A DNA stretch of 64,000 nt, from NCBI RefSeq assembly GCF_023055435.1, contig NW_025964334.1, forward strand, positions 61,194,001 to 61,258,000, written 5' to 3'. This DNA is from Haliotis rufescens (Eukaryota). A model generated the notes under the pieces. That model searched no databases and was not told the DNA's origin. It was given only the letters and a program-made list of their open reading frames with translations. Below, piece by piece: positions 5,023 to 31,716 of this stretch; within the stretch, counting starts at the first letter, position 1; each line of letters starts with the position of its first letter. Made by a program: the position numbers and the translations under genes.

Positions 5023-5065
5023 GGCACATTCTGTCACTCAGGCTCACTCAGAGGGTGGACACACA

Positions 5066-5440
5066 TGACAGATCCACCACCACCACCATTGCCACCACTG
5101 CAGAGAAGCCTCTCTGCATCCGTGGGTACCGATGAACCTGCCCTTGCTGCTGCACCACGCCATCCCCAGCGTCGACACTCACCTTGGTGTTGTTTTGGCA
5201 TGACATTACCCTGCAGTGTTTTTTGCACAGATCTTGGTGATATATGGCGTGATCATCATGAACATGGTTTAGTTGGGCTTGGATCACAGAGAGAAAGAGT
5301 TGTGGACAGCCCTGCTCACCAGTTGTTTGGGATACATACTTCCACCACCCACCTTGGCCGCCTCACGAGACATCCCACGACACACGCCAGAACACTTCAA
5401 CTTGATACCTCATCCACTCAAAGTTTTCTTACCTAGCTCA
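5066..5440 (+). pseudogene. Small two-TM Polinton protein relic
   Basis: WCCFGM...AQILVIYGVIIM...ELWTALLTSCLGYILPPP read across frameshifts; counterpart at 40216-40575 (-). Confidence 0.55.
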
Positions 5441-5478
5441 CATCGTCATTGCTGCCGTCTCCCCCTTCTTTTTTTTTT

Positions 5479-8400: not shown

Positions 8401-9630
8401 TGTATAAATCAGCTTGCACACAGACAACTGCAGAATGACATGTCATCCATTTGCTAGTTTAGTTTAGTTTAAACATATTTTATTCACAGAACAAAATGAG
8501 AATTGTATTGGGGACAAGTTCTTGCAACTTAGTAAACCCCTCTCTGCATAAAATATGTACAAATATACAGTTGCAAAATAAATAAATTTGCTTCAGTCAG
8601 TAAAATCAGACTTTCCACATTTACACATCAATATATTTGTGTAAGTTTGTTACGTTATAATTATTCCATTGTGTATATAACTTCCTACTTTACCAATTGA
8701 AATATGATTCAATTAGGTTAAATATGAACAATTATGATGAAAATCGTCAATAGGATATATTACAATTATGTACAATACACACAGAGTATTTCTCAAATAA
8801 ATAAGAAAACTGAGTTCTTTTTTGTAATTAATCCTCTTCTGGACAACCATAGAAATGAAATTCCAATGCGTTTATATATACATATAATTATACAACAATG
8901 TACGATAACGACCTCAATCCTCCCCCACACCCATACTTTAATGACGATTGTACGATAAACCCTGTACCAACCCTGACAAGGATAGGTTCTAGTCATTTAA
9001 CGCCTTTGACACTAAACTTATAAGGTTATTACAATTAACGTAAAAAGTTATTACATTTTTCCGCAAGTTGAGATTATTACAATTTACGTCAATTTTGATT
9101 ACAATTTGCGTATTACAACTTACGTCAAATTTTATTACAATTTACGTCGTAACAAGCATATTACGGGTATCTTGAAAGAACAGTCCTCAGACAGCGTCCA
9201 AAGTGATGGCAGATGATTTGTCATTGCTGCCAGGTATCCTCAAGATAGTCTTCGATTTGAGATGCTTGGAGATGGAAAAGTGCGATTCCATGCCCCTGAA
9301 GAAGAAGAATTCCATACGAGAGGATCACTCTATGCCACGGAATTGATCATGCCAAGTCCACTCTCGAGAATGCTTGGATTTGTTCAACTACCACTCCTCG
9401 CTAAGGATGACTATAAAACCTACACAGGGACTGCTGTTCCCTTGAGTGCATTGGCCCAGTGGCAAGTGGGGGCTACTCCCATGGCAGGTGGCTGTGTAGA
9501 AATCACAGGTGATACAAGGGCTAATCGCCTGTCACGATTTGATACTGTGTACATTTACACCAACCTGGTCGAATATCAAATTGTGGGCAATACGATGGCC
9601 CCATTGCTGATACACGTGCCTTTGTCAAAG
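5479..9630 (+). pseudogene. Polinton minor capsid (penton/PX), copy A, split by a 3.3 kb insertion
   Basis: FYMTLPSDASMDIYPNDT...WEVGVSEIHFP lies in 5479-5838 and VYIYTNLVEYQIVGNTMAPLL in 9160-9630. The gene is contiguous in copy B. Confidence 0.88.
5839..9154. mobile_element. Non-autonomous TIR DNA transposon with foldback interior (TGT...ACA ends, 5-bp TSD; Ginger2/TDD-like, tentative)
   Basis: Termini TGTTACAACGTAAATTGTAATA and TATTACAATTTACGTCGTAACA. TSD AGCAT at 5834-5838 and 9155-9159. The empty site has a single AGCAT in copy B (~39785). Confidence 0.9.
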
Positions 9631-10075
9631 CGGCGGTAGAGACTTTCACAAGGATCAGCTCAATAGTGCCTATGTAGGCAGCAAAGAGAAGAATCCGTAC
9701 AACTTCAAACACAACCATGTCACCATGACGAAGCTGAAACTCAATGGCCAGGAAGTCCATGGCACGGAAATGAAAAGCGACTTCAGCAACAATAGCGCCC
9801 ATCTAAAACAAGTCTACATGAATATGTTCCGAAAAACTGGACAGCTGTGGCGGCCTGAGACCTGTGGGGTGACTTCCAAGGCCTTTGCTCAAGGTTACTC
9901 CTTGTAGGTGGGGGATCTCACACCAGATCTTGGCGCTGATGAAGGCATCAACAATCCTCGACACACTGGCGATGTTGGGTTTGGAAATCCAGTTTGGACA
10001 AGCTCTTGAGACCCCGGTCACCCTCATCTGCTATGAGGCATACAAAAATGTTCTGGAAATAGATCGAACGGTGGG
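9631..10075 (+). pseudogene. Polinton major capsid (PY/hexon) C-terminal fragment, copy A
   Basis: KNPYNFKHNHV..KLNGQEV...GLEIQFGQALETPVTLICYEAYKNVLEIDR; the 5' part was removed by a ~1.3 kb deletion. Confidence 0.88.
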
Positions 10076-10314
10076 TTGTGCTTTCTCTCCCATGGAACAG
10101 GCCTGTTCCTATGGAAAAGAAACACAAGGGTCGGTCTCAGGCCAGGCAACGGAACGGACCGATCGGCGCGCTATGTTTTCGATCAATCAGGGCGCAGCGT
10201 GTCGGACCAATCAGCATGCAGCAATGTCTGATCCGGTCTCTCTCCTATTAAGAGAAAGCGAACACTCGAGTGGGTTCAGTGTCACTTGTGAAAAAAAATA
10301 TCATCGCATCAAGA

Positions 10315-10699
10315 ATGGCTGAGACGAAGAGCTGTACGAATGCTTGTGGGTCCAGATCTGAGTGTACTACGGATGCTTGTTGACCCAGTAAGCCGCCACC
10401 ATCATGTCATCAAACTTTTGAAAGAAGACTAGCCTCGTTTGAGTCGTGGGTTATGCAGATGAACCAGACCGCTGAAGACATGGCCCATGCAGGCTTCGTC
10501 TACACAAAAAGTACCGATAGTGTGTACTGCGTCCCACGACGATCCATGGGTGGAACACCACAAGTGGTCCCCTCACTGTGTCTACCTCCAGCTAACGGGG
10601 GTGGTGAAACACAAGAACGTGGCAGCTACTTTCTTGCACTATTTGTGCGAGAATACGAATCAGAGCAACGTGAATGAGGAAGCTTTCCCGCCTTCCTAG
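10315..10699 (+). pseudogene. BIR-domain (IAP-like) gene carried by the Polinton
   Basis: FERRLASFESW...MAHAGFVYTKSTDSVYC, then after a frameshifting deletion DDPWVEHHKWSPHCVYL; these are BIR hallmarks (RLxSF-W, AGFxY, DDPxxEHxxxxPxC). In-frame TGA at 10381. Confidence 0.88.
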
Positions 10700-10860
10700 C
10701 ATGAAGTTTTCGTTCCCGTTTCAGTTCCCGTTCCAGTTTTTGGTTGTTTTGGGCCAACGGCCCTTTTCAGGGCCACCCAACTCTCCCGAAAGAATGCTTT
10801 CATCATTGCTTTGCCAACCAACAACACACACACACACAAAAAGAAACCCAACAACAACTC

Positions 10861-11025
10861 ATCCCTCCTCCTCCTCCCCTCCAGCTCCTCCTCCTCCTCC
10901 CCCTCCTCCTTCTCCCCTCCAGCTCCTCCTCCTCCTCCCCCTCCCCCCCTCCCTCTCCTCCTCCCTCTCCTCCTCCCCCTCCCCCCCCCTCCCTCTCCTC
11001 CTCCTCCCCTCCACCTCCCTCCTCC
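10861..11025. repeat. (CCT)n/C-rich polypyrimidine tract in Polinton subterminal region
   Basis: Nearly pure C/T run; shorter in copy B (35875-35950). Confidence 0.9.
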
Positions 11026-13625
11026 CGATGACATCTTTGATGCAGGTGACAACCCGCCCTCTCCCGGAACCGGACGTGCCGCCCTCTTGGAGGCAGGCGC
11101 ACGGCTCCCGGAACCGGATGTGACGTCCTCTTGGAGGCATGCACACGCCTCCCGGATGTGACGTCCTCTTTGAAACGCACGCCTCCCGGAACCGGATGTG
11201 GCGCCCTTTTCCGGTAAGGGGGAGATAACCCACTTCCGGTAGGGGAGATAACTCCTGATGGCTTGGCTACCAAAGCACTGTCCAATACTACCGTTGTTTT
11301 ATACATGATTTATCACATATTTGTAAATTTGCAAAAGGTGATGATAAAAGTAAGTGAAATATAAAACAAAATGTTAACCCAGAAATCTTTACGTAAGCGA
11401 ATTTAATGTGAAACCAACAAACAACCAACAAATGGTATACAATCAACAATATACTACCACATTAATTAGGTTTATAAATCAATACAAATAACTGAACTGC
11501 AACTAAAATTGCAGTACACAAGTACACAACAGAATCTTCAGACGATAAACAGTGGCACTATATAATATGACGACAGTGGTCAGAATCAAATACGATATTT
11601 CTACAGGGTGCCAGATCAGTCCAGTGTCACTTGAACATCACAAAATAGTCTACACTGTTCCCTAAGTTTACATATCACGCTAGCATCTAAATATAGTAAC
11701 TTCCTAACCACTGCTACACTTAATACTACTACATTCCTGACAACTAATCAATGTCCAAATACAAGACAATAAGCTTCCACCGAATCTCAACAGAAACAAT
11801 GTAATACAATTAAAATCACTGTTTAACAATAAAATACACTGCCATATAACAATAAAAAGAAAACATGCACTTGCTTGTGTATTTGCATGTGTGATGAACC
11901 TGTGTGGTGTCTTGTATTTCATTTTATTCTCCATCAACATTCGGGGAAGGGACATGCAGCAGATGCTAATGTATTGATGTTTAGCATGATGCTCACAACG
12001 AACACCACGTGCAACAAACTATATTAGGTGTCTCATATTCTTTTTATTCATGCTTATTAGCTACACTACAGGAGACATACCATGGGTCATTTTAAGATTA
12101 TTTGTGTTCAGTATATGTTATAAACTTAAACATAGTTGTCTTTGAAAAAAACCCAGCCTTCCATTAGGGTGTACCAGTAGGTGTAGGAAGGACGTACCAG
12201 TTAATGAGGTTACTGTTATGTTTATTTAAAACACATGTGTGATGTCATTCTATTGTTTGAACGCTCCATTATTTTTCAGGAATGAAGAGTTGTTTGTCAA
12301 CAATACGTTATCTTGAACCAACATTTGTAACAATGTCCACTTGGAATAGACGGAACTATTTTTTACATTTATTGACAAGTAAATAATTTCATTTCTTTCC
12401 AAAACATGTGTCGCCAGCAGGGTTCGAACCAGCATCGTTTGATTTGAGAACGTGAAATTGCCAACCTTAGCTACGGCGTCACATGAATGTATAGGGTGAA
12501 ATTAACTATTAAATATTTTCATAATTTTGCATAATGCTTAAAATCTCAAAATAATATGTATATAATTTGTGTTAGAGCAGGTTACTTACAACGATGTTCA
12601 TATTTATAGCAATTAGATAAACCTTTCACGAGAACGCATTCAGAAAACGCATTCCTCGATGCAAAGACGACTCACGCAGTATAAATACAGACAACAAAGA
12701 GTTCTGGTATATTTTTCAAATATTTTCTACAGCAGAATATTTTGTCAAAGTGTAAAGTAGTGATGAGTTTTAAGTAGGGGAATATCCTCGTAACTCGAGT
12801 TACTCGAACATTCCCCTCTACTTAAGCATTGGTTGCTGGTAATAGTTTGTGTTGTAGCAATACTCGTCATAATATCATTTTGCCATATGTGAAGAAATAT
12901 ATTCTACTGACAAACGATATCTTGTGTTGACGTAATGTCGCGTCTGTTTGACGGCACCAAACACATCGTTTTTTGTGTCGTCCCCAACACCGGCCGCGTT
13001 GTTGGAAAAAGGTCGCCCTATCTCATCACACTTCCACCAGAAAACTGGTAACGTGTGAATAGGGTATGATCGCTGACCCTAGTTTGGAGTGTAACTTTGA
13101 CATACTGATCAGTGTTCAGTCACGGCCAGCTTTGCATGTCTACAAGTACGAAATCGCGATACATGACGGTCCTCAATTTGTTTTACTTTGTCCCGGTTTC
13201 TCCTCGGGCCTGATTAATCAAATTGTTGAACATCTACCTATTCATTCTCAACCATAACATGTTTACTTCCTAGAATGCTGTATCGTGTAAACAAGCACAC
13301 TGATGTCAATACCGAAACTACTGTGCACTTCTTACTTCCTCTACGACAGGAAGATGTCACGTGTCACGTGTACTCCACAGGAGGAAGATGAAAATGACGC
13401 ACAAATGAGTAACTTCACATTTAGCTGATAACTGTTAGCGAAAAAGGTAAGTTTAAATGAGCTTTTGAAACACATATTTCTAAGTGACCTGAAAGCTGAT
13501 TCTCTGGTGTACAAAATCCAATGGATTAAATATGACCATACCACCACGAGACAAATTATTCTAACAGTCTCACCTATTCTTCTCAATGGCAGAAAACAAC
13601 CTATAAAGTTTGTGAATAGACAAAA

Positions 13626-14560
13626 ATGAATGATACTGGCATATTTATTCTTCTTGATAAGAAACTATTTAACTTTCAGGAAGATATATTATTTTCAACC
13701 TGGTGTAATAATCCTGTAAGAAAGTGCACTAATGGTATAATACTCCGTCAGAATGATGTGCTTGATGTCCTCTGTCAGTGTAACGATGTTTACATAATGT
13801 CTTATGGCGACCTTTATTCCCGTATCAGCACAGAAGCTGATTTTGTAGAAGATGACATTCTTGAACACTTCCACGGCCAGGATAATAACATGTAGGATTT
13901 TTTACTTGATCATTTGAACTCAGAAAGATTTTTCGAAGATTCGGGAATAAATAACTTTGGCAAATGTTTGTAAGATATGTGTCGTATTTTTGAATATTCA
14001 TAGTTTGGATGGAAGACATGGTACAGATACTGGTATTGGAGATTTCACATTTATTGGAAATCAGGGCGCCAATGTGGTTGACTATGTAATCAGATCAAAT
14101 GGCTTGTTTGATAAATGTGAAAGTTTTAAAACAGCGTCTCGCACCGTGTCGTCACATGTTCCAGTCACCACTGGATTACGTACGCAAAACTAACTTGATG
14201 ATGATTAATCATCAAATAGACAGCCTCGGAACAAGATTAAAATCGAAGATGGGTTCCAACATTTTCAAAAAATATTCTCTTATCCGAATGATAGGAACCC
14301 AGATGATTTTGGGATGTTTAATTTCGACGATAATCATTCCAAAAAGGTGACAACAGACAATGCCAATTCTCCAATTACCAAGAAAGACAGTTTTGATAGT
14401 ATTACACACTCAAAGAACAATAAGACATCAGGTGTGGATAAAGTTATTTAAGAATTATATCGGTTCGAACTCGAACGAATTTTTTTCTTTCCTGAGAATT
14501 GGTCACTTGGCTTTATTATTCCGCTTCACAATCAAGGAATTGTGAGTGATACAAATAACT
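13626..14560 (+). mobile_element. Decayed LINE (APE endonuclease region); mirror copy ~31850-32790 (-)
   Basis: GDFNS (copy B)/GDLYSR, GDFTFIGNQGANVVDYVI and SHVPV motifs. Confidence 0.75.
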
Positions 14561-14719
14561 TGGGAATTGAGGAATTGCACTTTTGATATCTTCCTCACAA
14601 TTCTTAGCTGAACACTCTGTAAATGTGTAAATGTTCATTTTCCATGCCATGAAACTTAGAGAGCATGCGCTTACTCAACGACTTGATGTTATTTAACAGT
14701 TACCATGGCTATTGATGTA

Positions 14720-15704
14720 AACTCTTCAAAAAAAGAGTGTACCTAATAAAGGCGCTCTATTTAATTTAATATCAAAGAAACAAATATGAAAATTTGGAGC
14801 TCGATAGTCACATATTGTCGTTGTACAAAGGCATTGAAAACTGTCAAATAAGGCAACAAGGTGGCGCTGAACTCAGTATCTCGTGTGACTGCACCGGGCA
14901 GCAATGGCGGCTCTGCATCTCTTTGGCACTGACTGAATAAGTGTACGAATTCTGTCCTATGGAATTCTGCGACATTCTGTTTGTAACGCGTTGGCCAGTT
15001 GAGGGAGTGTCTGCGGCGTGTTCTGACATTGACGTACACGTCGATCGAGTTCATCCCAGAGATCTGGAGATCTCGATGGCCTAGGCAAGACGTGGATGTT
15101 GGCATTATGAAAATAGTCTACCGTGACACGAGTTGTGTGCCGTGGAGCATTGTTCTGGTGAAACAGCTCCCTCGTGTGGTCAATGATTGGAAGAAAGTGA
15201 GGTTAAAGAACTTAAAATTTCAAATCTCGTGGTGTAGGATATGGCCCCCCACACCATGACATTACCGCCACCTAAATTGTCGAATTCACGTACACAATGT
15301 GGGGTAAAACGCTCATTTCGATGACGAAAATCGTGATTCATCGCTAAACCACACTCGTCTCAAGTTTCTCAAATTTTCGAACTTGAAAAATGTTGACAAT
15401 TGAATAACAAATTATTGGCTTATGCTTGCCTTTTAATAGCCACTACCACGAGTTACGAATGCCATAACTTGCACGTGCATTTTGCTTCACTGTTTTCCTT
15501 CATGACATTTTTGAACAAGTGCGAAACAATTCCGTTTAAGACATTGCAAATCGACAAAAGCTGCGTTTTGACGCACGGTTTGTTGAATATCAGGCCACCA
15601 ACATTTTCCAATAACATATATCCAATTTATATACCGTTTTATTTTGTGTAGTGAGGTTCAGTGAACTACATACTACCTGTGCGTTTCTTTTTTTTTGAAG
15701 AGTG
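14720..15704 (-). mobile_element. Tc1-like element, internally deleted copy
   Basis: TA-flanked (A/C)ACTCTTCAAAAAAAGA TIRs; mirror of 30272-31716. Confidence 0.85.
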
Positions 15705-15777
15705 TATATTCTATTGTATATATTTTTTGTATACTTTTTATGCATGTACTATAAGCCTACGGCCTTCTCAGTATTTA

Positions 15778-15913
15778 NNNNNNNNNNNNNNNNNNNNNNN
15801 NNNNNNNNNNNNNNNNNNNNNNNNNNNNNNNNNNNNNNNNNNNNNNNNNNNNNNNNNNNNNNNNNNNNNNNNNNNNNNNNNNNNNNNNNNNNNNNNNNNN
15901 NNNNNNNNNNNNN
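15778..15913. other. Assembly gap (136 N)
   Basis: Run of N at the position corresponding to the (TCAA)n microsatellite at 30218-30263. Confidence 1.
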
Positions 15914-15962
15914 GATTGATTGACCACAATTCTTAGCTGAATGCTCTTCCTTCCAGACAATT

Positions 15963-18900
15963 ATGGCCCTCGCTGTGATTATGATTCTAATGTCCATAGC
16001 AGTTTTCACACAAGGTAAAACAATGAAGCTTGTGCCTCTAAATAATATCTTTTACATTGCCCTGATATTATGAATGATAATGATTTTCCTGGATTTGTCA
16101 TGTCCCACCATATGGGCTTGAACAGAGGACTTCCATACACTCGGCGACAGAACAAATAGCATCTAATGCTGGGGATCAAGCTGATAATGTTTCAACTTAC
16201 CTGGTCCAAACTTGATTGCTTACAGGACCCGGTGATTAAGCTGGAATATTGTTAACTGTGACATAAAACAACGCAAAGGTAGAATCAAACTATGAATTGC
16301 TTGCAATTACAAATATATTTTATAAACATGTAAATTATTAGTGCATGAGGTTTCAAGCATAAGTGAATATGGATGATTGACTAATTGCTCCAGTCCTGAA
16401 CAAGTGTTCAATGCCAGTTACACGTCCCCTCGCCAAACTGCACATACCACTTTGAGCCTTAGATCTCCGTGATCATCTTTCCACACAATCAAGTAACGTC
16501 AAGAGCATTCAAATACTATATTCCTATATCTTCCTGGTCATATATACATATTAAATATTATTTATGTGACCTTCAAAAGGCATTTTATTCCGCAGCCAAG
16601 TTATGTTTACATTTTACAGCAGCAGGGTGTCTGAAGGGTCATCAGTGTTCAAACTGTAGCAGTACAGGGGACTGCAAATCAAAATGCTTCGGGGGATATT
16701 TTGGTGTGACTTGCAAGACACGTTGCTCGAAAGGTTGCCTAAATGGTGCGTGCGAGACATCAGAGACAGGCATTGGTAGATGCGCTGAAGGATGTGTACC
16801 TGGTTTTCAAGGCACAGATTGCACAAGACCATGTGCGCGTCAAGAGGCCACATGTACCAAGTGTCAGTCTGAGTGTGACCAGGGCTACTGTCAGCTGACC
16901 TCATCCTGTGTGTCTGGCTGTGTGGACGGATACTACGGCTCTGACTGTAAGAACTGCTCCAACAGGTGTAAAACCTGCAACAGGATCACTGGCACATGTG
17001 ACAAGTGTTACCCACTATATACCGGCCCTGATTGTCATTTTTCAGGATTGTGTGAAGCCGGGTGTACGGAGGGATGTGGACGTCAATTAAGTGGTAGTTT
17101 CTGTGTTGAGGTGTGCAGTCATAATTGCAAGGTTCATACCAACATGAATGATACGACGAGATGCCTGCCCCCTGGCGTAAATGCGTCTCTGTATTGTACA
17201 TCTGAGTGTCACAACCAGAGTGGCGAGTGTCTCCATGGCTGTGTTGAAGGCTGGTATGGTCCAAGGTGCCTCTCTCCTTGCAATGCAGACTGTCGTGGTG
17301 GACGATGTGATGCTGCTGGCGTCTGTGTGGACGAATGTATCGCGCGATATTCTGGAGAGTTTTGTAATGACACATGTGAAATGTGTCGTGATGGGGTCTG
17401 TGATCAGAAGACTGGCACGTGCATTAATGGATGTGACGTCAGTAAACGTGGATGTGGAACGTCCTGTACCAGCAACTGTTCCAGGGATTATTGTATGAAT
17501 GAGACATGCTCAGGTAAAAACAACCATTAACATTCCTTCAGTCAGTGTGCCAGATAATTAGTACTTCGTAATTCATTATTGAACTTATTGCGATTACCAC
17601 TTGGGAAATTTCTAAATTGAAAAGACGAAATTATGAATATAATCAATATTAACCTTGACATCGTCAAAGAAGAAAATAATGTTATACGTTTTCTATTTAA
17701 AGAGTTTACACTCACCATTTCGCGAACACCTGGTGTCATCACTATTTGAATGTGATTCATAAAGCCATGCCCACAATATAGTCGAAATTGTGTAGTGGAT
17801 TCTGCTTTTAGAAGATGTTTCTTTTATTTACGAGCTTTTTCTGTGACTTCCAGGCAAAATATTTCTCCTATATATCCTCTCTCCCCATCCCTCTATGTTT
17901 ACCCTCACCCTTAAACACTTTTGTGTACGTCCTGGATTGATCAGCATTGCAAGTTTATAATTTCATCTATATCTATCATGTATAAACTATGATAAAATAT
18001 GCAACTTTTCGAGTCAGGAAACTCAGATCAGTTTAATTCAATTATATCCAGATCACCAGAATAATCTAGGCTGTTTGTCTGTCTGCCTCTTCGTGTGTTT
18101 GGTAGTATGGTCAATACAAAATAGTTTTTGTCACATTCTCACCACTCAACTTTTATGTCATCTAATAAAGGTGAGCTTCAGTACCTGGAGAACCTGGTTC
18201 CATCAGTGCTTCCTGCTTAGTTTATCCTATTCTACTCACCAGATGAAAAGCCTACTGGGATCAGTGGAAGTCCGCATGGTCTCATCATAGGACTACCATT
18301 AGCGTGTGTACTCTTTGTCCTGGCGATCCTGGTGTCAAACTATGTCTGTTACCGCAAAGGTCAGACCAAGCAAAGGTGAATTTGAGGGATGTGCGTGCTG
18401 TTTGAATGTTTTATCCACTGAAAGAATGTTACCTGCAGATTGTAAAGCGCTCAATTTAAATTGAAAACGTTGTATCAAACCTGGTGTATGAATAGTTTGC
18501 CTTCACTTCCTTCAGTGCAGATCCATGAGTATGCCCATGAAACTTTGTATGCCCACTGGAAACGGCAGAAAATCGAGACTGATTATTCTCGGGCGTTGAC
18601 GTTTTGAATTTAGATACATTGTCAAGTGGTATTCCTTTATTGACCACGGTGAAGCTAATTTTAGCCACCAAATAACAGAAAATATCCGGAAACTAAAGCT
18701 ATCAATCGTCCACAACAGTTTAACAGATAGCATTTCACCTACGAATTCGAATTCGAATTATAATAAAACATAGATGGGAAAGGGTGTCATTGTGTACGTG
18801 TAGGATAATGGTTACACTTATTACTGCTACTGACGTATTCGTCCTTCTAAGTTACATGTATCTATGTAACATTTCGAACTTGTACTAACCCTTTCTTGGT

Positions 18901-19417
18901 GCCCCTTGCCCTGATATGATGTACGACCTCAATGGATTGTTATCATAGTAGATGTGTCATTACCATAGATATAGTGTAAGATTCTTGACAATGAGCAATA
19001 TGCTTCCCTTTCTTCTTCGTTTGTTATTACAGAGAGAATTTGGCGGTTTGGGAGTGTAGCCCCGTTGTAGAGTACCAGTCGTGGCACATATACTCTGACA
19101 TAGAAGAGGGGCATTTGGACGCTAAGGAGCAAAATGAGGGCCAAGAGAACCTAGAAGATGAACCTGGTCTCGCCATGCCTGTCATAGCAGATGTCTTCGC
19201 CGTTGCTGCGCCAATTGTACACAGAAATGATGACATGTTATCAGAGAGTTCAGCATCATCCACTTCTCAATCCTACACCCACCTGATTCCTAAGGTGGTC
19301 ACTGATGACCCGGGGACAGTTGACAGTTACATATCACCAGTGGAAGAGTTGACCCCACACCCACCTGACCCTGACGTAGTCGCTGATGACCCGGTGACAG
19401 CGGACAGTCACCAGTAG
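15963..19417 (+). CDS. Type I membrane receptor with EGF/laminin-EGF-like Cys repeats (MEGF10/SCARF/Draper-like), copy A. Predicted exons 15963-16014, 16620-17513, 18243-18375, 19033-19417; 487 aa
   Basis: Exon 1 encodes signal peptide MALAVIMILMSIAVFTQ|G before a gtaaaa donor. Exon 2 (894 nt) encodes CxxGxxGxxC repeats. Exon 3 encodes TM GLIIGLPLACVLFVLAILVSNYVCY followed by RK. Exon 4 encodes an acidic Tyr-containing tail. All junctions are GT-AG with compatible phases (1,1,2); the total of 1464 nt is in frame. Confidence 0.85.
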
Positions 19418-19929
19418 AAGATACCTATATGGTATTTTGAGACATTTTCTTATGGTCATTGTCAGCGAACAACTTCCAACAGTTTCTAAGGGAACAATAC
19501 TTCTTGATGAAAAGCTAACATATTATAGCCAGAACATACATATACCAGTATCCCTGAAACAGGTAACCACAAGCACTAGTAAATAACAGCTCGGCAGATT
19601 TTACTGACTTTATTCGGACTTACGTCTACTCGTTGTGGCAGTTCTAAAACTAAAAGTGTATGTAACCTCACCAAAACATAATGCTTTTGCTTCCATCGTT
19701 TTAAATCTTGAACTTGTTTATCTATTTTTCTTGCTTGTAATTGTCAACCCCATACCCCCACCCCACAACATACATGACCTGTGACATAAGCTAATGAATC
19801 CTAGTGTACATGGACAGATATGAGCTCCATTTCGCCTCCAATGCAATATGTGTGCATGTAGATAATTAAGCTAAAATGCTTCAAATGAAATAAATAACGG
19901 GCCAGATGGTTGAATGTGCAACTCAGTTA

Positions 19930-20462
19930 TTGTTTGTTTGATGTGTTTGTCTTTGTTTAACGCCGCACTCAGCAATGTTCAAGCTCCATAACTGCGGTCT
20001 GCAAATAATCATGCTCTGGACCAGACAATCCAGTGACTGACATTATGATTTGGTTTGTTTGTTTGTTGTTTAACGCCGCACTCAGCAATATTTCAGCTAT
20101 ATGACGGCAGTCTGAAAATAATCGAGTCTGAACCAAACAATCCAGTGATTAATATCATGAGCATCGATCCACGCAATTGGGATACGATGACATGCATCAA
20201 CCAAGTCAGCGAGCCTGACCACCCGAGCCCGTTAGTAGCCTCTTATGACCAACATAGTCGGCTTTTACAGCAAGTATGGGTTGCTGAAGACCTATTGTAT
20301 TCCGGATCTTCAAGGTTCGACTAACATCATGAGCGTCAGTTCACACCATTGATGTACGATGACAGGTGTCAACTAAGTCAGCAAGCCTGACCACAATCAT
20401 AGTGTCCTTTTGCGGAGAGCATGGGTTGCTGAAGACCTATTCTAACTCGGATCTTCACGGGG
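19930..20462 (-). mobile_element. Cluster of nested/partial SINE copies (CCCGTGAAGATCC...AAACAAACAAAC family)
   Basis: Same family as 35378-35615 (+) and 58208-58503 (-). Confidence 0.8.
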
Positions 20463-21489
20463 GAACTCCAATAATGACAAAGCCTATGCTACATGTATCT
20501 ACCTTTGTATTGTAACGGAAAAAAGTAACCGTCCTTCAAACAAATTCAGTCAAACTACATCTTTTCTGAAATTAAATAATTAATCTTTAAATATATATTA
20601 AAAAGAGATATATCCTGGTGATTCACAATTTCAAAGTCTACGCCTCAGTGTGTATGCTGCAAGCAAGATAACTTGCCCATCTCTGGTCGTCCACGTGTAA
20701 CATCACGTCAACAAGACATCAACATTCGGTTGGTGCATTTACTCGGCAGATTCCTTGGTTAAGAATAACATTTGAATTCATCTTTTACAGGTAACCTAGC
20801 TCTACATTAAAAACACAATATGTTTATCTCCAAAATCAAATACAAGTGATCGTATATCTATAAGAAGTGAAAACATTTTTGTTTAGTACAATAGTGAGTG
20901 ACTGAGTGAGGTTTAAGCCGCTTTTAGCAATATTCCAGCAACATCACGGCGGGGGACACCAGAAAGGGGCTTCACACATTTAGTACAATAGAGAGGACGT
21001 TGTTTCAGAACAAGGATACATACTTCTTCATTACCAACTTCATGGGATATCTAAATATGCCCAAAGCCGTAACTAAACAGTACAATTCTAATATGAAATG
21101 CCCAATGTAAGTATTTCCCCTCACAGGGATGGTATAGCATTCTCTCACACTGATGCGGGTGTCTATATGTGGGCATTGATAAACCACGTAATATATACTC
21201 ACACGCAAAGGAAACGCAAGAGGTTTTAAGCAAATAGGTAACAAACACGGAACCATAAATTGATACGAGTTTTAGCAAGTAGTGAAGCCTGACGGTGGTA
21301 TCAATATTTTTGGTTGCATTTTGGAAGCCCCGAGTAAAAAAGCAACATAAAAAACGAATCGCCAAAACGCACCATTTCAATGAATATGTGGGTATCATGC
21401 ACCCATTTCTCGCGAAATCGAAAATGCACGAACTGTCACGAACTGTAGTGGGTATAAAACTGTGGCCGATTCTTGGACCTACCACTCCT

Positions 21490-22154
21490 TGGTCAACAAT
21501 GCACGCCTAAGTCAAATTCAGAGAAACCAGGCTATCGGACGTCATTTCAACGTCAACATAACCACAATTTACCGTTTCCTGCATCGATGCAATGCTACAC
21601 AGACCACAGATGACCTTCTTCGTAGCGGTCGTCCTAGGGTCACCACACCTCGACAAGATCGGCAGATTACCCGTCAACACCAGCGACATGGGCATTGTTT
21701 GGACTAAATGCGAGACTTGGACCCATGTGCTTTCTGAATGTTGGTCAAGGTCGGGGACACGGCGTCACTGCTAACACTGCGGTATTTCGACCAAGTGATC
21801 AGACCTGACGTTGTTCCATTTTTTGCTCAACATCAACAACACATTTTCCAGCAGGACAACGCTCGTCCCCATGTTGCCAGAGCTACCGTGGCCTTTCTGC
21901 AACAACATAATATCCGTGTTCTACCGTGGCCAGCTCTCAGCCCTGATCTGAACCCCATCGAACACTTGTGGGATGAGTTTCAAAGGCGTCTGCACAATGT
22001 GCGCCCAGTCCCTACAACTGGCGATGAACAACGCGCAGCTGCTCTGGATGTGTACAGGAAGATCCCTAGGGCCGTCACAAATCGTCTGATCCACTCAATG
22101 TACAGGAGATGTGTGGCAGGGATCAATGCTAATGGTGGTGACACCAGGTACTGA
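21490..22154 (+). mobile_element. Tc1-like transposase pseudogene (element ends not resolved)
   Basis: RSGRPRVTT, FQQDNARPHVAR, WPALSPDLNPIEHLW. Confidence 0.9.
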
Positions 22155-22349
22155 CCGACATTTTGGGTATTGACCCGAAACCGTGTAAGCCCTTAACATT
22201 GGAAAAAACCCCAATTATGTCATCTGCCTTTTAATCCATTAAACTGTCTTAAGTCAATTTTTTGTCAATCTTTTCCTATTAGTCTTTCTTGTCTTTACTG
22301 TTGAAAATAAATAACATGTATACTGCATATATATGATATAATATTTTGT

Positions 22350-24360
22350 ACAGCGTGGATATCGGTCAAACTCACCATATAAAACAGCATTTGGAAAACA
22401 ATAATTTATATGTAAAACAGATTTACAAACTTTTCTATGTACAATTTCTATATAATCCTTTTGCTTGTATTCCCAAACCTACTATACAACAATATCGGAA
22501 CTATTTTGGCGTCAAATATTTGATAGGCATTATTAGCACATATATTGTATTTAAACAACGCATTGTAATAGTATTCAGTGCTTTACTTGCCTGTTCTACA
22601 AGGGTATTAGAGTTATAATCTGAGTCCACCTTTCGTAACAAAAGTGTCTGCCACCAGTTTTGTAATAAAACAACATTAGTTTGTTTGTGTATTAATTTCC
22701 ATTTCCCATATTCCTACAAGAGATCTTTATAATTTTATAATAGTATATGCTACCAGTATTAGATCATCTGCAAATGATAAACACAATATGGTTTACCTTT
22801 CCTCTGATATGAACACATCATCGTCTACCCTAGGGCTAATAAATTCCACTAATTCCTTAAATGAAAACTGAGCAAAGTAAAGGACTAAAAGTATATTCTT
22901 GTCGTACACCAAGCAAGTACGTAAAAACTCAAATAATGTGTTTTCCTTACCCGCAGAAACCGCAGACGTAACATGACTGGTTAACTCTAAAGAATTTACC
23001 ATGAATGAGAAATGTTTGCTAAAAAATCCTAATTTTATTACTATTTACCATTTCAAATGATTTCTTAAAGTTTACGAAAGAGCAGTAAAATGTACCTTTT
23101 TTACGTGCTATGTGTTTCTGTTTCCAATGTCTCTAATATGAATATTTTGTCTTCAGTGGAATGATTTTATTTTTAAACCCACTTTGGTATTCAGAAATAT
23201 TATCTATATTTTTAAGGAAAATATCCAGTCTCTTATTTAGTATTGCCATAGCGACTGATGTATGACAGCAAGGCTAAATACCCTGTAGCCATGACATGTG
23301 CATGTTTCCATAACTTAACTGTCATTATGTATTAGGCGCTAATCTCCGTTGTTAATCCTCACCAACATTTCATTGTATATTGACTGTCAGCCAACCTGGG
23401 CCACCATATCACTTCCCGTTAATTAATGTTATTTATAGTACGTGTATGAGCTGTGTCGGTTCATCAGCCTAGAAGTCCCATGTCCAGAGCAACTTCATTG
23501 TTTGTCCACTGTTGTTCATTACTATATATGTGTTACCATAACCCATTTAGTCAGCTTGGTATTCCGAGTGCTGGTGTAGGGACGACCTCGAGCAGGATGT
23601 GCCGCTCGTAGGAAGCGTTCTGAGGTTTAGCTGGAGCTCCGCTCACCTCATGTATGCCTGAGTTGGAGGGTCCACCCATTGTTGTGTTTGTGTTGTCAGA
23701 GCATGTATTCCGCTCATTGTGTATTTGTCGTTTATTTTTTACATGTTGTGCATAAAACGTTCTGGGACAGTGATGTAGATTTTGTCCTTGATTTCCCCAA
23801 GAGCTAATTCCCTGTCAACATGTGCGTTGACAGTATAAAAGCAAATATCTTACTCATGTTGTTAAGTAATGAGATTCCTTTGTAGTTATTAGGGTCTTCT
23901 GTGTTGCCTTTCTTATTTATGGGTATTATACTAGATGTAGCCCAAGCATAAGGAAGGTTAATTGTTAGCATATTCAATTTTGGTTAAACAACACAGTGAG
24001 ATGTTGAATTAGTATATCTGTGGCATTTTTAGAGAACTCTGAGAGAATACCGTCATCTCCTGGAGATTTATCAACTTTAAGATTATCAGCTGTATCCGAT
24101 ACTTCACAAAAGGTATCTCGGATGACAAGATCATCCGGTTGCAGGCACTTTTCACAATCAGTAACTATACGTAATGATAACAATTTTTCCACCTTAAGAT
24201 TAAACTCTGTTTCCATCTCCTCGTTCATCTGTTCATTAGATTATTATAGTGTTACTGAAGACGGACTCTTTTGAATATTTATTAACTTATTACTATGAGC
24301 TCTTGCAGTTGTGTGTATCAGTCTGCTTTAGTTAAATTGTGATCAAACCACTATAGCCTG
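22350..24360 (-). mobile_element. Decayed LINE reverse transcriptase (CR1/L2-like)
   Basis: KSPGDDGI, IIPINKKGNTEDPNNYKGISL and LSFADDLIL (22751-22780) motifs. Confidence 0.8.
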
Positions 24361-27039
24361 ATTCAAACTGTTCAACGAATATCCGTTGCTAAAGATATTC
24401 CATATCACAGTGATTCTCGGTTGTTTCTGCTGGAGCATAAACAAAGAACAGTATCAGACGGAATTATTTTTACCGAACCCACCTTGGTATTGTCTTAAGT
24501 ATCGAGTCTCTTATTTAGCATATAACCTAATATCTTACTAGAAGTGCTAAGACAAATATTATCTGGCCACTTTGGATGAATCCGTGACAATAACTTACAC
24601 ACGCCACGTTCAATTTATAGTGCGAAGCCTCCACAAAAGCGAATTTTTGAGAATCGACTAGAAAAATGAATATTTGCTAAATATATGTGCAAAACCCCTA
24701 TCTGAGCAAAAAGATATAATCTGAACTGAAATGGAACTGATAAAGTCAGGAATACTTATAAAGTCCGTTCACATTCCATCTAAGGATGGATCACTATTTG
24801 ATAGAGATTCATAAACACACCACGTTTATTATATTCACGAAGTCCGAATCGTACAATGGACATTTCTGATGATTATGAAAGATGTCTTTCGTTTTTATTT
24901 GGTTGTAGATTTGTTTTTGACCGTCCGTGCAAAATCCGGACCGAACAATTAAGATGTGAGAGAAAAGTGGCTTCCTGTAACTCCCGTCATGGTAACTACT
25001 TAATGCTGTACACTGTGTCATTGTATCTACGTATACAGCAGATACAGCTATGTCGTGTTAAAGAATATTTGTTTCACGACAGTTAAAAGGCGTTGCAATT
25101 ATTAGTCACGTTTCAAATCTGTATTCGATTGAGTATTCGTCTTTTACAAGTAGCCTTAATAAACCAATCATGATTGCCTCGCTCATTTGTGGAGTGTGAT
25201 TGAAAACTAATGTCAGGTATGTACGTTGCATCAAAAACAAGGAGGTACAGGTATGGTCGTCTGTAGTAGAATCATTAGTCAATAATAATCTTGGGCGGTT
25301 TTTGCCCGGTCTGATGTTAAGGCAACCCAACGAGTATACTCTTTTTGGTATACAGTTGAATACCAAAATGATTCTATGGCAGAGTCATAACATCTGTAGT
25401 TGTTACCTGTTCTGTGATAACAGAAATGTCCCCGACTTTCATTGTAGTCATATGTCTATGTAAACATTAGTGCCAAGGCACTGTAGCTTATCAATCAGTT
25501 GATTAAAAGTGAGCGGTTTCAGTTTGATCGCTCTTATTTTAAAAAAAAAGATATCAGGAAATTATCAACCTAAAACTAATTTACATTTCACGATTAAAAT
25601 TTGAACTCCACTGTAAAGCTATATGTCTTACCAAAGGGACTCAGTGACATTTAGCTTGTATTTTTAGTAGCACCCTCCTGAAGATCATGCTTCAAATTTG
25701 CCACAATTGAAGAGTACCCTTTTTCAGTTTAAATGAAAAAAAACTATGCTTATTTCAATGTCATGAATAAGTCAAAGTAACATTAATCATAAATATTCAT
25801 AATAAAAGTTTCATGTGGTTCTTGAAATTTCTAACAGTATTTTTGAATGTTTTTCTCTGAAATCTAAACATTCGTTAAAATCTCTGAAACAAACAACTTC
25901 ACATCTAATTTTAAGTTATTATTACATACTTCAGATGTTTCAGAGAAGAAGAAGATATGGGCTCACTTGGACTCACTGGTGAGCTAAAACAGAAACCGAA
26001 AACTGTCCTTGTTGGTACCAATCAGTGTTTATTTCCATATACACCAAAGACGGTGTTGCCAAATCACATTTGCGCAAATAATGCATAATTAATATGTCAG
26101 GAAAACGTGAAATGCTTCAATAATGATATATACAGACGAGCAGACGCTTGTACAGATGACTGTAAGTTTATAACAATGTACAGAAATGAAGTTAATTATC
26201 GGAGTGATATTCGAAGAAGGGAACTAAACATACATGTATTGAATGTATGAACCTAGAGAAAAAATTGGTACTGACTTTTTTAAATTGAATTACAACAAAA
26301 CATAGCTCCCTGTGATATAGATGAAAATGACTGCACTCCCTTATATGCAATTTGTTACATGGTGACTTCAAAATAAAAAGAAACTTAAGTTAACTCAGAA
26401 ATCTATACACAGAAGCATTCAGTGTGAAACCAACAAACAAAGAAATGTTAAACAATGAAAAACTGTATTATAAAATGAAGAAGGCTTACAAATCAATAAC
26501 AAATACTGCAAAATAATTACAATGACAGTACACGATAAAGTAGCAGTACAATATTCAAAGGCAGTACAATTTCAATGGCAGAATAAAATACTATAGCAGG
26601 AGTAATAGCAATAGCGAGTCAGCTATAATAATATTCACCAAGCAGCAACAGTGGTCAAGCTTACAATATAGGCCCAGGCTGGACATAGTCTAAATTCCTT
26701 CTGGAAAGTTCCATGCCATGTCTTCAACTGTGCCAGAAGATTCCTGACAACTATTTATTGTTATTAAACAGAAACACAGTAACACAATTATAACATTGTC
26801 TACAATAAATGCACTACCACATAATGTATTGTGATATTTGATAGTTACGTTGTAATATGTGAAAGTGATTCATAGGCACAAGCTAATGATATAGTCTGAA
26901 TCGTACAATCAATTCTGCGTTTAGCAGAGTATCTTTTGAGTATCAAAGGTGACGCCCACGGCCATAAAGTGACATAAAACAGCCAAGTCAAGAACATTTG
27001 AAATGTGCCTTCTACAACACCAGGCACACACGAGTTCAC

Positions 27040-27312
27040 TGTCTTCATTTACCTAGAGGAACAATATAACTGGAACACACAGAGGAATACTTTGACTTGA
27101 ACAACTAGAGGAACAGTATGAGTGGAACACCTAGAGTTGGAATATGACTGGAAAGCTTAGGGAAAAGGAATACTATGACTGGAACACCTAGAGGAACACT
27201 TTGACTGGAACACCTTTAGGAAACCTATGACTTGAACCCACTGGAGGAACACAATGACTGGAACACTTAGATGAAGACTATGACAGGAACACCTAGAGGA
27301 ACACAATGACTG
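27040..27312. repeat. Degenerate ~26-bp minisatellite overlapping the stop codon and 3' UTR of receptor B
   Basis: Repeated TGACTGGAACACCTAGAGGAACAC units. Confidence 0.85.
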
Positions 27313-30179
27313 GGCCCGTAGCCTCCTCGTCAACATCACAGTAGTCAGAACTGCGCGACCTACTGGGTGGCCCAGGCTGTTCAGCTGATGGATGTTGTGG
27401 ACGACTGATATCTTCCCGGTCTGTTATTTCATTCAATAAAATAGCTTCGCCATGGTCTGTAGTGTTTCTGTAAAATAACAATACTTTATCATGTTTCTCA
27501 TTTCAAGAAACTAAAAAGACAAACTAATCATACACCAAGTTTGAGGCAACGATTTCAATTTAAATTGAGCGCTTTACAATCTGCAGGTTACATTCTTTCA
27601 GTGGATAAAACATTCAAACAGCACGCACATCCCTCAAATTCACCTTTGCTTGGTCTGACCTTTGCGGTAACAGACATAGTTTGACACCAGGATCGCCAGG
27701 ACAAAGAGTACACACGCTAATGGTAGTCCTATGATGAGACCATGCGGACTTCCACTGTACCCAGTAGGCTTTTCATCTGGTGAGTAGAATAGGATAAACT
27801 AAGCAGGAAGCACTGATGGAACCAGGTACAGAAGCTCACCTTTATTAGATGACATAAAAGTTGAGTGGTGAGAATGTGACAAAAACTATTTTGTATTGAC
27901 CATACTACCAAACACACGAAGAGGCAGACAGACAAACAGTCTAGATTATTCTGGTGATCTGGGTATAATTGAATTAAACTGATCTGAGTTTCCTGACTCG
28001 AAAAGTTGCATATTTTATCATAGTTTATACATGATAGATATAGATGAAATTATAAACTTGCAATGCTGATCAATCCAGGACGTACACAAAAGTGTTTAAG
28101 GGTGAGGGTAAACATAGAGGGATGGGGAGAGAGGATATAAAGGTGAAATAATTTGCCTGGAAGTCACAGAAAAAGCTTGTAAATATAAGGAACATCTTCT
28201 TAAAGCAGAATCTACTACACAATTTCGACGATATTATTGGCATGGCTTTATGAATCACATTCAAATAGGATGACACAAGGGGTTCACGAAATGGTGATTG
28301 TAAACTCTTTAAATAGAAAACGGATAACATTATTTTCGTCTTTCATAATCTCGTCTTTTCAGGTTAGAAATTTCCCAAGTGGTAATTGCAATAAGTTCAA
28401 TAATGAATTACGAATTACTAATTATCTGGCACATTGACTGAAGGAATGCTAATGGCTGTTTTTACCTGAGCATGTGTCATTCATACAATAATCCCTGGAA
28501 CAGTTGCTGGTACAGGACGTTCCACATCCACGTTTACTGACGTCACATCCATTAATGCACGTGCCGGTCTTCTGATCACAATCCCCATCACGACACATTT
28601 CACATGTGTCATTACAAAACTCTCCAGAATATCGCGCGATACATTCGTCCACACAGACGCCAGCAGCATCACATCGTCCACCACGACAGCCTGCATTGCA
28701 AGGAGAGAGGCACCTTGGACCATACCAGCCTTCGACACAGCCATGGAGACACTCGCCACTCTGGTTGTGACACTCAGATGTACAATACAGAGACGCATTT
28801 CCGCCAGGGGGCAGGCATCTCGTCGTATCATTCATGTTGGTATGAACCTTGCAATTATGACTGCACACATCAACACAGAAACTACCACTTAATTGACGTC
28901 CACATCCCTCCGTACACCCGGCTTCACACAATCCTGAATAATGACAATCAGGGCTGGTATATAGTGGGTAACACTTGTCACATGTGCCAGTGATCCTGTT
29001 GCAGGTTTTACACCTGCTGGAGCAGTTCTTACAGTCAGAGCCGTAGTATCCGTCCACACAGCCAGACACACAGGATGAGTTCAGCTGACAGTAGCCCTGG
29101 TCACACTCAGACAGACACTTGGTACATGTGGCCTCTTGACCCGCACATGGTCTTGTGCAATCTGTGCCTTGAAAACCAGGTACACATCCTTCAGTGCATC
29201 TCCCAATGCCTGTCTCTGATGTCTCGCACGTACCTTTTAGGCAACCTTCCGTGCAATGTGCCTTGCAAGTCACGCCAAAATATCCCCCGAAGCATTTTGA
29301 ATTGCAGTCCCCTGTACTGCTACAGATTGAACACTGCTGACCCTTCAGACACCCTGCTGCTGTAAAATGTAAACATAACTTGGGTGATAGAAGCTGTGGA
29401 ATAAAATGCCTTTTGAAGGTCACATAAATAATATTTAATATGTATATATGACCAGGAAGATATAGGAATATAGTATTTGAATGCTCTTGACGTTACTTGA
29501 TTGTGTGGAAAGATGATCACGGAGATCTAAGGCTCAAGGTGTGTGTGTGTGTGTGCATTTGGGCGAGGGGACGTGTAACTGGCATTGAACACTTGTTTAG
29601 GACGGGAGCAATTAGTCAATCATCCATATTCACTTATGCTTGAAACCTCATGCACTAATAATTTACATGTTTATAAAATATATTTGTAATTGCAAGCAAT
29701 TCATAATTTGATTCTACCTTTGCGTTGTTTTATGTCACAGTTAACAATATTCCAGCCTAATCACCGGGTCCTGTAAACAACCAAGTTTGGACCAGGTAAG
29801 ATAAAACATTATCGGCTTGATCCCCAGCATTGGATGCTATTTGTTCTGTCGCCGAGTGGATGGAAGTCCTCTGTTTAAGTCCATATGGTGGGACATGACA
29901 AATCCAGGAAAATCATTACCATTCATAATATCAGCGCAATGAGTGAGTGAGTATTGTTTTACGCCCCTTTTTGCAATATTCCAGCAAAATCAGGGCGGGG
30001 GACACCAGAAACAGGCTTCACACATTGTACCAATGTCGGGAATCGAACCCGGGTCTTCAGCGTGACGAGCGAACGCTCAGGGCAATGTAAAAGATATTAT
30101 TTAGAGGCACAAGCTTAATTGTTTTACCTTGTGTGAAAACTGCCATGGACATAAGAACCATAATCACAGCGAGGGCCAT
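27293..30179 (-). CDS. Type I membrane receptor with EGF-like Cys repeats, copy B. Predicted exons 30179-30128, 29359-28466, 27776-27644, 27467-27293; 417 aa; short tail with ITIM-consensus SDYCDV
   Basis: The first three exons have the same lengths as in copy A (52/894/133 nt) and the same splice sites. A distinct last exon follows the acceptor ttattttacag|A in phase 2 and reads RNTTDHGEAILLNEITDREDISRPQHPSAEQPGPPSRSRSSDYCDVDEEATGPVIVFL*. The total of 1254 nt is in frame. Confidence 0.85.
29942..30076 (-). mobile_element. 5'-truncated tRNA-derived SINE in the intron after the signal-peptide exon of receptor B
   Basis: 11-bp TSD TCAG(C/G)GCAATG; absent at the equivalent site in copy A (~16055). 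Confidence 0.9.
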
Positions 30180-30271: not shown

Positions 30272-31716
30272 CACTCTTCAAAAAAAGAAACACACAGGTA
30301 GTATTTAGTTCACTGAACCTGACTACACAAAAAATGCGGTATATAAATTGAATATATGTTATTGGATAATGTTGGTGGCCTGATTTTCAACAAACCGTGC
30401 GTCAAAACAAAGCCATTGTCGATTTGCAATGTCTTAAACAGAATTGTTTTCGCACTTGTTAAAAAATGTCATGAAGGAAAACAGTAAAGCAAATGCATGT
30501 GCAAGTTATGGCATTCGTAACTCGTGGTAGTGGCTATTAAAAGGCAAGCATAAGCCAATAATTTTTTATTCAATTTGTCAACATTTTTCAAGTTCGAAAG
30601 TGCCGTGACTGATCGCTGCCAATCGGTACATCGCCATAGGACGTATCCAAAGAGGGGAATCTTAGGCTTCTGTTACACGCCACTTCAACGTCCACCACAG
30701 CACCATTTCGCCTTTTGGACCGATACACACAGTTCAATTCGACTGCAGACTGTCCAAGAACCGGACAACCAAGAGTTACCACCCCTGCACAGGATCGCTA
30801 CATTCGACTGTTCCACCTACATCATGTCAATGCCACAGGTACCGAGACTGCATGGAGGCATCCCTGGTTTGAGGAGGATATCGGACAAGACTGTCAGGAA
30901 CAATCTTCACGAGGCTGGAATCCGATCCAGAAGACCAGTTATCGTCGCTGTTTTGCAACAGATCCATCGACAGCGACGCTTGCGTTGGTGCCCCATACCT
31001 TACATATTTGGAATATGAGAAACTTGAGACGAGTGTGGTTTAGCGATGAATCACGATTTTCGTCATCGAAATGAGCGTTTTGCTCCACATTGTGTAAGTT
31101 AATTCGACAATTTAGGTGGCAGTAATGTCATGGTGTGGTGGGCCATATCCTACACCACGAGATTTGTTTGGTTGTAGTTCAGGGAAATTTGACAGCAAAT
31201 TGCTACATGAATCCAATTCTTCAACCTCACCTTCTTCTAATCATTGACCGCCAGAGGGAGCTGTTTCAACAGAACAACGCTCCACCTCACACAACTCGTG
31301 TCACGGTAGACTACCTTCATAATGCCAACATCCACGTATTTCCTTGGCCATCAAGATCTCAAGATCTCTGGGATGAACTCGATCGACTTGTACATCAATG
31401 TCAGAACACGCCGCAGACACTCCCTCAACTGGCCAACGCGTTACAAACAGAATGGCGCAGTATTCCATAGGACAGAATTCGTCCACTATCCACACAGTGC
31501 CAAGGAGATGCAGAGCCGCCATTGCTGCCCGGTGCAGTCACACGAGATACTGAGTTCAGCGCCACCTTGTTGCCTTATGTGACAACGACAATATGTGCCT
31601 ATCTAGCTCCACAATTTCATATTTGTATCTATGATATTGAATTTAATATATCGACTTTATTAGGTACAAAAACAATTCCTAAAAATATACCTGTGCGTTT
31701 CTTTTTTTGACGAGTT
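30272..31716 (+). mobile_element. Tc1-like element with transposase pseudogene
   Basis: TA|CACTCTTCAAAAAAAGAAAC...GTTTCTTTTTTTGACGAGTT|TA; motifs GQPRVTT, WFSDESRF, FQQNNAPPH, WPSRS. Confidence 0.9.

Follow-up and report, generated by a model that had tools for sequence, protein, structure and literature searches.

Receptor pairing is viewed as a hallmark of innate immunity in vertebrates and of arms races between hosts and pathogens, and the receptors are built on immunoglobulin (Ig) or lectin scaffolds. In several vertebrate pairs and families (Siglec-11/16, Siglec-5/14, CEACAM1/3, KIR, and LILR) the paired receptors are held alike by gene conversion (PMC5701461, PMC4042635, PMC2832619). 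A single ectodomain is also combined with alternative tails in Drosophila Draper-I and Draper-II, where the ITIM (immunoreceptor tyrosine-based inhibitory motif) of one tail binds Corkscrew, the SHP-2 orthologue (PMC8092387). Here we describe a 64-kb stretch of the Haliotis rufescens genome (the window; positions are counted from its first letter unless a scaffold is named), which contains two convergent four-exon genes, gene A on the forward strand and gene B on the reverse strand. We show by sequence comparison that A and B face each other, are predicted to be intact, and belong to a family of type I surface receptors with epidermal growth factor (EGF) repeats that is very large and specific to Haliotis, and that its genes end in one of two old, interchangeable last exons, which encode a tail of type L (gene A) or of type S (gene B). 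The genomic signature of paired receptors is now seen in a mollusc, where the scaffold is of an unrelated, EGF-repeat type and the tails are specific to the genus.

By analogy, the locus would be nearest to the vertebrate paired receptors in its genomics and to Draper-I/II in its function, with the defining features failing for both. As in the vertebrate pairs, the abalone genes lie next to each other and encode nearly the same ectodomain but unrelated cytoplasmic ends; trees of the ectodomain place partners together, and the tails group by type; and homogenization appears to be recent and repeated, with amino acid replacements concentrated at the membrane-distal end. Unlike the vertebrate pairs, the abalone ectodomain is made of EGF-like cysteine repeats, not of Ig or C-type lectin domains; the transmembrane (TM) helices of the partners are identical, with no charged residue for an adaptor carrying an ITAM (immunoreceptor tyrosine-based activation motif), and the long tail itself has no ITAM; and the ITIM-like motif is conserved in one S subgroup only and is homologous to a motif of the partner tail. 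With Draper-I/II and CED-1/MEGF10, the abalone genes share a single-pass receptor design, EGF-repeat ectodomains, and tails with tyrosine motifs. However, the tails of Draper come from alternative splicing of one gene whereas those of abalone come from separate genes; no EMI domain (Pfam, E<=1), NPxY motif, or ITAM of the CED-1/Draper/MEGF10 kind was found in the abalone genes; and the L tail is restricted to Haliotis, the RefSeq label “draper-like” reflecting EGF-repeat similarity only. An earlier note on this DNA, made from the letters alone, had suggested a pair of the MEGF/SCARF type, but Pfam recognizes neither an EMI nor an EGF domain, which leaves a membership by name only.

Exon models of A and B were made by reading both strands and translating the exons (coordinates are listed in Table 1), and joined coding sequences were used only for local translation, dN/dS estimates, and trees. 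Both open reading frames (ORFs) are intact (487 and 417 amino acids (aa) in A and B, respectively), all splice sites are canonical, the intron phases are 1, 1, and 2, and good acceptors lead, in phase 2, into each of the last exons. Exons 1-3 measure 52, 894, and 133 nt in A as in B and differ at 3, 26, and 2 nucleotides, respectively, so that the proteins are 93% identical over exons 1-3; the last exons are unrelated. The TM helices are the same in A and B, and the exon-3 change (I322Y) sits in the stalk just outside the membrane. The equal exon lengths, the common TM helix, and the separate phase-2 splices to two different last exons had all been proposed in the earlier note, and the coordinates, phases, and translations agree with it; the end of homology, which it put at about 125 nt into the next intron, lies 128 nt into intron 3 (18503 in A and 27516 in B). 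Similarly, translation of the last exons gave the two tails it had described: one of 58 aa with SDYCDV in B, and an acidic one of 128 aa (net charge about -20) with YQSW, YSDI, YTHL, and YISP in A. The gene A model is identical, letter for letter, to RefSeq XP_046331645.2 (“protein draper-like”, 487 aa; found by cluster look-up), and the junction 18375^19033 is therefore an annotated junction.

We defined the tail classes from relatives in four Haliotis species and from tail exons elsewhere in the H. rufescens genome. Both types are present in H. rufescens, H. cracherodii, H. rubra, and H. asinina. The L tails are acidic, about 100-210 aa long, and contain four conserved modules (VEYQSW-HxYx[DE]IEEG, MPVIADVF, SYTHLI, and xY[IL]SPVE), which are sometimes duplicated internally; the S tails are about 45-58 aa long and contain a single tyrosine motif, Yx[DE][IVL][DN], which in nearly every case is placed precisely 16 residues from the conserved, hydrophobic C-terminus GP[VE]IVFL-COOH. 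By these conserved modules, the last exon of A belongs to the L type and that of B to the S type. The A tail is 87% identical to that of P0001 of H. cracherodii, and its exon, together with the end of intron 3, is homologous to those of gene C, an L gene. The S exon of B is matched over its whole length by S tails of the family (tblastn; P0019, 1e-6; P0021, 7e-6), and its flanks match the 3′ end of gene D, the homology starting 27 nt upstream of the acceptor and running on into the minisatellite of the 3′ untranslated region (UTR). Since both exons and their flanks are homologous to family tails, neither tail is a chance ORF. The length of the L tail varies because of module duplication: for example, three L tails on scaffold C357 (L023 3555-4049, L026 3014-3508, and L024 7819-8448) contain two or three internal repeats of the MPVIADVF...IVHRGDD...SSESS module.

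The four-exon design (signal peptide, one ectodomain exon, TM, tail; with the same three intron phases) fits A, B, C, and D alike, the ORFs of C and D being 492 and 395 aa long, and more than 130 ectodomain exons are found in the genome. Some annotated members in H. rubra and H. cracherodii depart from this design: P0008 and P0012 are without a TM exon or a tail, and P0009 and P0015 have an L tail and no TM exon, which suggests secreted forms or gene models with a skipped exon. A profile search with the L tail returned 18 representatives among 1.84 billion proteins, and all 12 of the 12 whose source was seen are from Haliotis; a word-based search with the L tail gave Haliotis matches only. A word-based search with the S tail of P0026 gave no match, and the L tail had no usable match in the ESM Atlas. 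Neither Pfam (E<=1; both ectodomains and both tails) nor a PDB sequence search (E<=1) returned a family or a match, and an AlphaFold2 model of the ectodomain (24-row alignment) reached a predicted local distance difference test score of 48 and a predicted template modeling score of 0.27, too poor for a fold search.

The earlier note had stressed near-identical ectodomains joined to different tails; A and B are a real pair of this kind, and the same pairing recurs at least three more times, so that, judged from sequence, there appear to be at least four L/S pairs with matched ectodomains in two species. Genes C and D lie 50-65 kb downstream of A and B, and their ectodomains are 96% identical, with homology ending inside exon 3. 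On scaffold C357, the neighbors G4 (L) and G5 (S) are 94.9% identical in nucleotides over the ectodomain exon, and the tail region of G4 is closest to another L gene (94%). In H. cracherodii, XP_071104802.1 (S, P0026) and XP_071104298.1 (L, P0027) share about 96% of their residues as far as YRKG, beyond which they diverge. A neutral origin of such pairs has to be weighed here: with hundreds of tandem copies and cassette exons in the family, L/S chimeras would keep arising as a by-product of array dynamics (unequal crossover, segmental duplication, and gene conversion), the pairing would have no function, and B would be young and possibly redundant or silent. We consider this explanation possible but doubtful. 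The abundance of ectodomain exons in the genome speaks for it, as does the near lack of correlation between tail type and the ectodomain tree (S requires 6 changes, compared with a shuffled mean of 7.2). On the other hand, all four S genes examined (B, D, G5, and G1) have an L neighbor as their closest ectodomain relative, L-L neighbors on C357 are only 86-87% alike in the ectodomain compared with 91-95% for L/S neighbors, and the pattern is found in two species.

In the ectodomain tree, A groups with B (support 100/94) and C with D (100/99), both groups lying within L clades; the sister of the A/B group is P0001, an L gene of H. cracherodii. Among the S tails, those of B, D, and P0026 agree with one another at about 60% identity (60% for B against D and against P0026) and with other S tails at 33-50%. 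Between the A/B pair and the C/D pair, the divergence is similar throughout (about 68% identity in the ectodomain, 70% in the L tail, and 60% in the S tail), which fits an old L/S pair that would have been duplicated and then homogenized recently and independently inside each pair. Because A is closer to B (93%) than to its H. cracherodii counterpart (89%), the homogenization of A and B postdates the split from H. cracherodii. The suggestion of the earlier note that the tails are old paralogs whose 5′ halves were later homogenized gains support from this comparison, as well as from a BLASTP alignment of the S and L motifs. Ectodomains grouping by neighbor and tails by type is what we read, on these trees and identities, as the concerted-evolution signature of paired receptors.

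A and B share exons 1-3 because these exons lie at the inner ends of a 15-kb palindrome bounded in intron 3. Each arm is about 15 kb long and made of collinear blocks that are 85-96% identical (self-blastn, minus strand) and closest near the inner ends; the duplication therefore reaches far beyond gene size, an extent that the earlier note had missed. Since the homology takes in 12.7 kb of non-coding upstream DNA, it points to a segmental event rather than to selection on the ectodomain, as the neutral explanation would have it. Substitution divergence between the arms is 4.1-6.6% in introns and upstream DNA and 2.9% in exon 2. An assembly artefact, in which two haplotypes or a fold-back chimera had been joined head to head and only one gene existed, might be suspected from the run of Ns within arm A (15778-15913). 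But the arms differ by 4-15%, compared with a heterozygosity of 1.37% in the HiFi assembly xgHalRufe1 (QV, the consensus quality value, 65; PMC9709998), and contain arm-specific transposon insertions (for example, 29942-30076 and about 30600-31010), which identify them as diverged copies and not as a fold-back artefact; each arm runs gap-free into a different, genuine tail exon of the family, with flanks that match C on the A side and D on the B side; and comparable pairs elsewhere are in tandem orientation. We rejected the haplotig or fold-back artefact on the divergence, the arm-specific insertions, and the distinct tail exons, and give it almost no credence. No other exons of the family and no other recognizable genes were found in the window or the arms, and tblastn found no relics of the opposite tail type in the spacer.

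Table 1. Coordinates of the features described in the text. Positions are those of the window unless a scaffold is named (C556 is the scaffold that contains the window, at 61194001-61258000).
Feature	Position	Strand	Description
Gene A exon 1	15963-16014	+	52 nt; start codon plus signal peptide; phase 1 at its end; equals residues 1-17 of XP_046331645.2 (P0025)
Gene A exon 2	16620-17513	+	894 nt; entire Cys-rich EGF-repeat ectodomain; 54 Cys in 298 mature-ectodomain residues
Gene A exon 3	18243-18375	+	133 nt; stalk, TM helix, YRKGQTKQ; ends in phase 2
Gene A exon 4	19033-19417	+	L-type tail, 127 aa plus split codon, TAG stop
Gene B exon 1	30128-30179	-	52 nt, signal peptide; peptide equals first 17 residues of H. 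cracherodii P0001
Gene B exon 2	28466-29359	-	894 nt, ectodomain; 26 nt / 21 aa differences from A, 0 Cys changed
Gene B exon 3	27644-27776	-	133 nt, TM; 2 nt differences from A, both in codon 322
Gene B exon 4	27291-27467	-	S-type tail, 57 aa plus split codon; terminus ...SSDYCDVDEEATGPVIVFL-stop
Left arm of inverted duplication	3272-18503		About 12.7 kb of upstream DNA, gene A exons 1-3, first 128 nt of intron 3 (self-blastn, repeat finding)
Right arm of inverted duplication	27516-42541		Gene B exons 1-3, first 128 nt of intron 3, upstream DNA (self-blastn, repeat finding)
Unique 9-kb spacer	18504-27515		Both tail exons, both 3′ UTRs, transposon remnants; no arm homology
N run in arm A	15778-15913		50 nt upstream of the gene A start codon; opposite the (GATT)n microsatellite of arm B
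26-nt minisatellite, about 10 copies	27051-27313	-	Tandem Repeats Finder; begins within the last S-exon codons; unit carries the VIVFL-stop coding motif
Gene C	C556:61274438-61277867		L tail; tandem with D; same scaffold as the window
Gene D	C556:61285174-61288470		S tail; tandem with C; same scaffold as the window

A and B differ by 25 non-synonymous and 6 synonymous coding changes. None of the 54 ectodomain cysteines is hit by the 21 replacements (P=0.013), and these fall preferentially in the membrane-distal third, residues 18-111 (13 of 94 residues, compared with 8 of 204 elsewhere; Fisher P=0.003). The rate of non-synonymous change is about 0.6 relative to the intron rate, and A and B have 12 and 11 derived changes, respectively. 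For C and D, at a similar synonymous divergence (dS 0.03), dN/dS is 0.55. Both copies, A and B, look functional from these counts, with fast-evolving surfaces; that all cysteines are kept in both and that exons diverge less than introns count against the neutral explanation.

We also looked at what follows exon 3. In A and B (window 18376-18381 and 27643-27638) and in D (C556:61287874) the exon-3 donor reads ...AG|GTGA, and retention of intron 3 in these genes would add one arginine and then a stop, giving a receptor with a 9-residue cytoplasmic stub. If transcripts of B ended there and never used the S exon, B would be a nearly tail-less decoy receptor, or else B might be silent. The AGG-TGA at the exon-3 donor of A, B, and D would agree with this, as would the lack of a protein record for B in searches by single exon or database identifier, but the S exon is intact, in phase, and preceded by a good polypyrimidine/AG acceptor, and S tails of annotated mRNA models are homologous to it from end to end, among them that of P0026, which has the same junction (...KGQTKRR|NATE). 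We consider a gene B without its S exon very unlikely.

The difference between the tails lies in the distal part: the L tail has three further conserved modules, including YTHL and Y[IL]SP, and the S tail ends after GPVIVFL. The tails of A to D contain only single YxxL/I sites (YSDI and YTHL) plus YxSP. The ITIM consensus [SIVL]xYxx[IVL] is found in the S tails of B (SDYCDV), D (SDYSEI), and P0026 (SDYCDI), and a given tyrosine would fit it by chance with a probability of about 0.07. The earlier note had taken SDYCDV for an exact ITIM; this reading rests on the serine at position -2, which is seen in B, D, and P0026 only, and the proximal Yx[DE]IEEG of the L tails is homologous; the claim is weak. 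Its proposal of a receptor pair with opposing signals is supported in one part, by the paired genomic signature, and lacks support in the other, an ITAM or a charged TM residue being absent from the long-tail member. A report on oyster NCAM1-SHIP2 describes ITIM-phosphatase signaling in a mollusc (PMC11841013); such signaling by the S tail is plausible but unsupported here.

We favor the following account as a whole, with a probability of about 0.6: a family with cassette-like L and S tails, homogenization by palindrome, and S as a modulating partner of L. The 15-kb inverted duplication, or conversion from arm to arm, overwrote everything up to 128 nt into intron 3, and each copy kept its own tail exon, L in A and S in B; the same homogenization of ectodomains between neighboring L and S genes took place at least three more times. 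Because the duplicated 12.7 kb of upstream DNA includes the promoters, A and B are probably expressed in the same cells, where they would see nearly the same ligands. The L form may be a signaling or engulfing receptor with its tail as a multi-tyrosine docking platform, and the S form would keep only the first, common tyrosine motif. Since it is without the distal docking modules, the S form is most likely a modulating partner (competing, inhibitory, or differently trafficked) and not a second activator. The sign of the S signal, such as phosphatase recruitment of the ITIM type, would be the weakest step.

Several observations weigh against this account. Homogenization that ends where L/S homology ends is expected from the mechanics of recombination alone, and the neutral explanation likewise predicts conversion tracts ending in exon 3 or intron 3. 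The dN/dS of 1.17 between A and B, calculated on just 6 synonymous changes, fits relaxed constraint as well as diversifying selection, and a value of about 1 is also what neutral array dynamics would leave. No protein matching B, C, or D turned up in database searches with single exons or database protein identifiers (the spliced B, C, and D proteins were not used as queries), and the lack of B among annotated proteins would suit a silent copy. BLASTP pairs the S motif DYCDIDEGDM with the proximal L motif EYHSIEEGDL; because of this alignment both tails can be said to carry the same ancestral tyrosine site, and the tyrosine motif, being common to L and S, does not set the tails apart. At position -2, the remaining S tails have H, K, Q, R, A, or E instead of S. 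Regular-expression scans of the tails of A, B, C, and D found no ITAM and no NPxY, and thus nothing that marks L as activating, and the TM helix common to A and B has no charged residue.

A bolder version would have true paired receptors evolve independently in abalone on an EGF-repeat scaffold. Hemocytes would express L and S forms together, and both would bind one ligand, perhaps of pathogen origin, with opposite outputs: L would signal by way of its distal tyrosine modules, and S by recruiting an SHP-type phosphatase at SxYxx[IV] or by means of the hydrophobic motif at its C-terminus. Repeated conversion, maintained by selection, would hold the ectodomains of partners alike, and a flip of the spacer could swap the tails. 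We regard this full version as unlikely. If the two tails do signal differently, the locus would show cleanly that receptor pairing evolved by convergence, and would offer a handle on immune recognition in a farmed and endangered group of animals hit by withering syndrome. Even if the pairing is neutral, it would be a well-resolved case of exon-cassette shuffling by palindromic duplication with an intronic breakpoint.

Large palindromes with arm-to-arm gene conversion and an invertible spacer are known, for example, from the human sex chromosomes. The abalone palindrome resembles them in its 15-kb inverted arms with 85-97% identity, closest near the inner ends, and in its 9-kb unique spacer, but differs in that each inner arm end falls within an intron, of gene A on one side and of gene B on the other. 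Judged by geometry alone, a recombination event between the arms would turn the 9-kb spacer around and exchange the tails of the two ectodomain variants without disrupting either gene; either orientation of the spacer gives two intact genes because the inner arm ends lie in an intron of each.

The palindrome and its surroundings also contain repeats. A Tc1/mariner remnant (DDE_3) is located in the spacer at 21738-22151 (forward strand), and a Tc1-type remnant (HTH_Tnp_Tc3_2) in arm B at 30575-31015 (forward strand), as part of an insertion without a counterpart in arm A. Intron 1 of gene B contains a 135-nt insertion (29942-30076) similar to a short interspersed nuclear element (SINE), which gene A is without, and related SINE copies are found in the spacer at about 19930-20470 and 20895-20990. 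The region at about 10600-11120, low in complexity and rich in glycine and proline, has a match in arm B too. A minisatellite like the one after gene B follows gene D, with about 167 copies over 4.3 kb (L020 454-4786; C556:61288454-61292786), each unit carrying VIVFL-TAG; other S genes (L012 and L016) have longer repeat units that re-encode ...CDVDESDMGPVIVFL past the stop. Outside the palindrome, a 473-aa ORF of low-complexity repeats at 44881-46299 (reverse strand) has weak Pfam matches to Lamprin and DUF7409, and a satellite array at 54460-57400 of the window, with a 37-nt period and about 79 copies at 84-90% identity, is crossed by long spurious ORFs.

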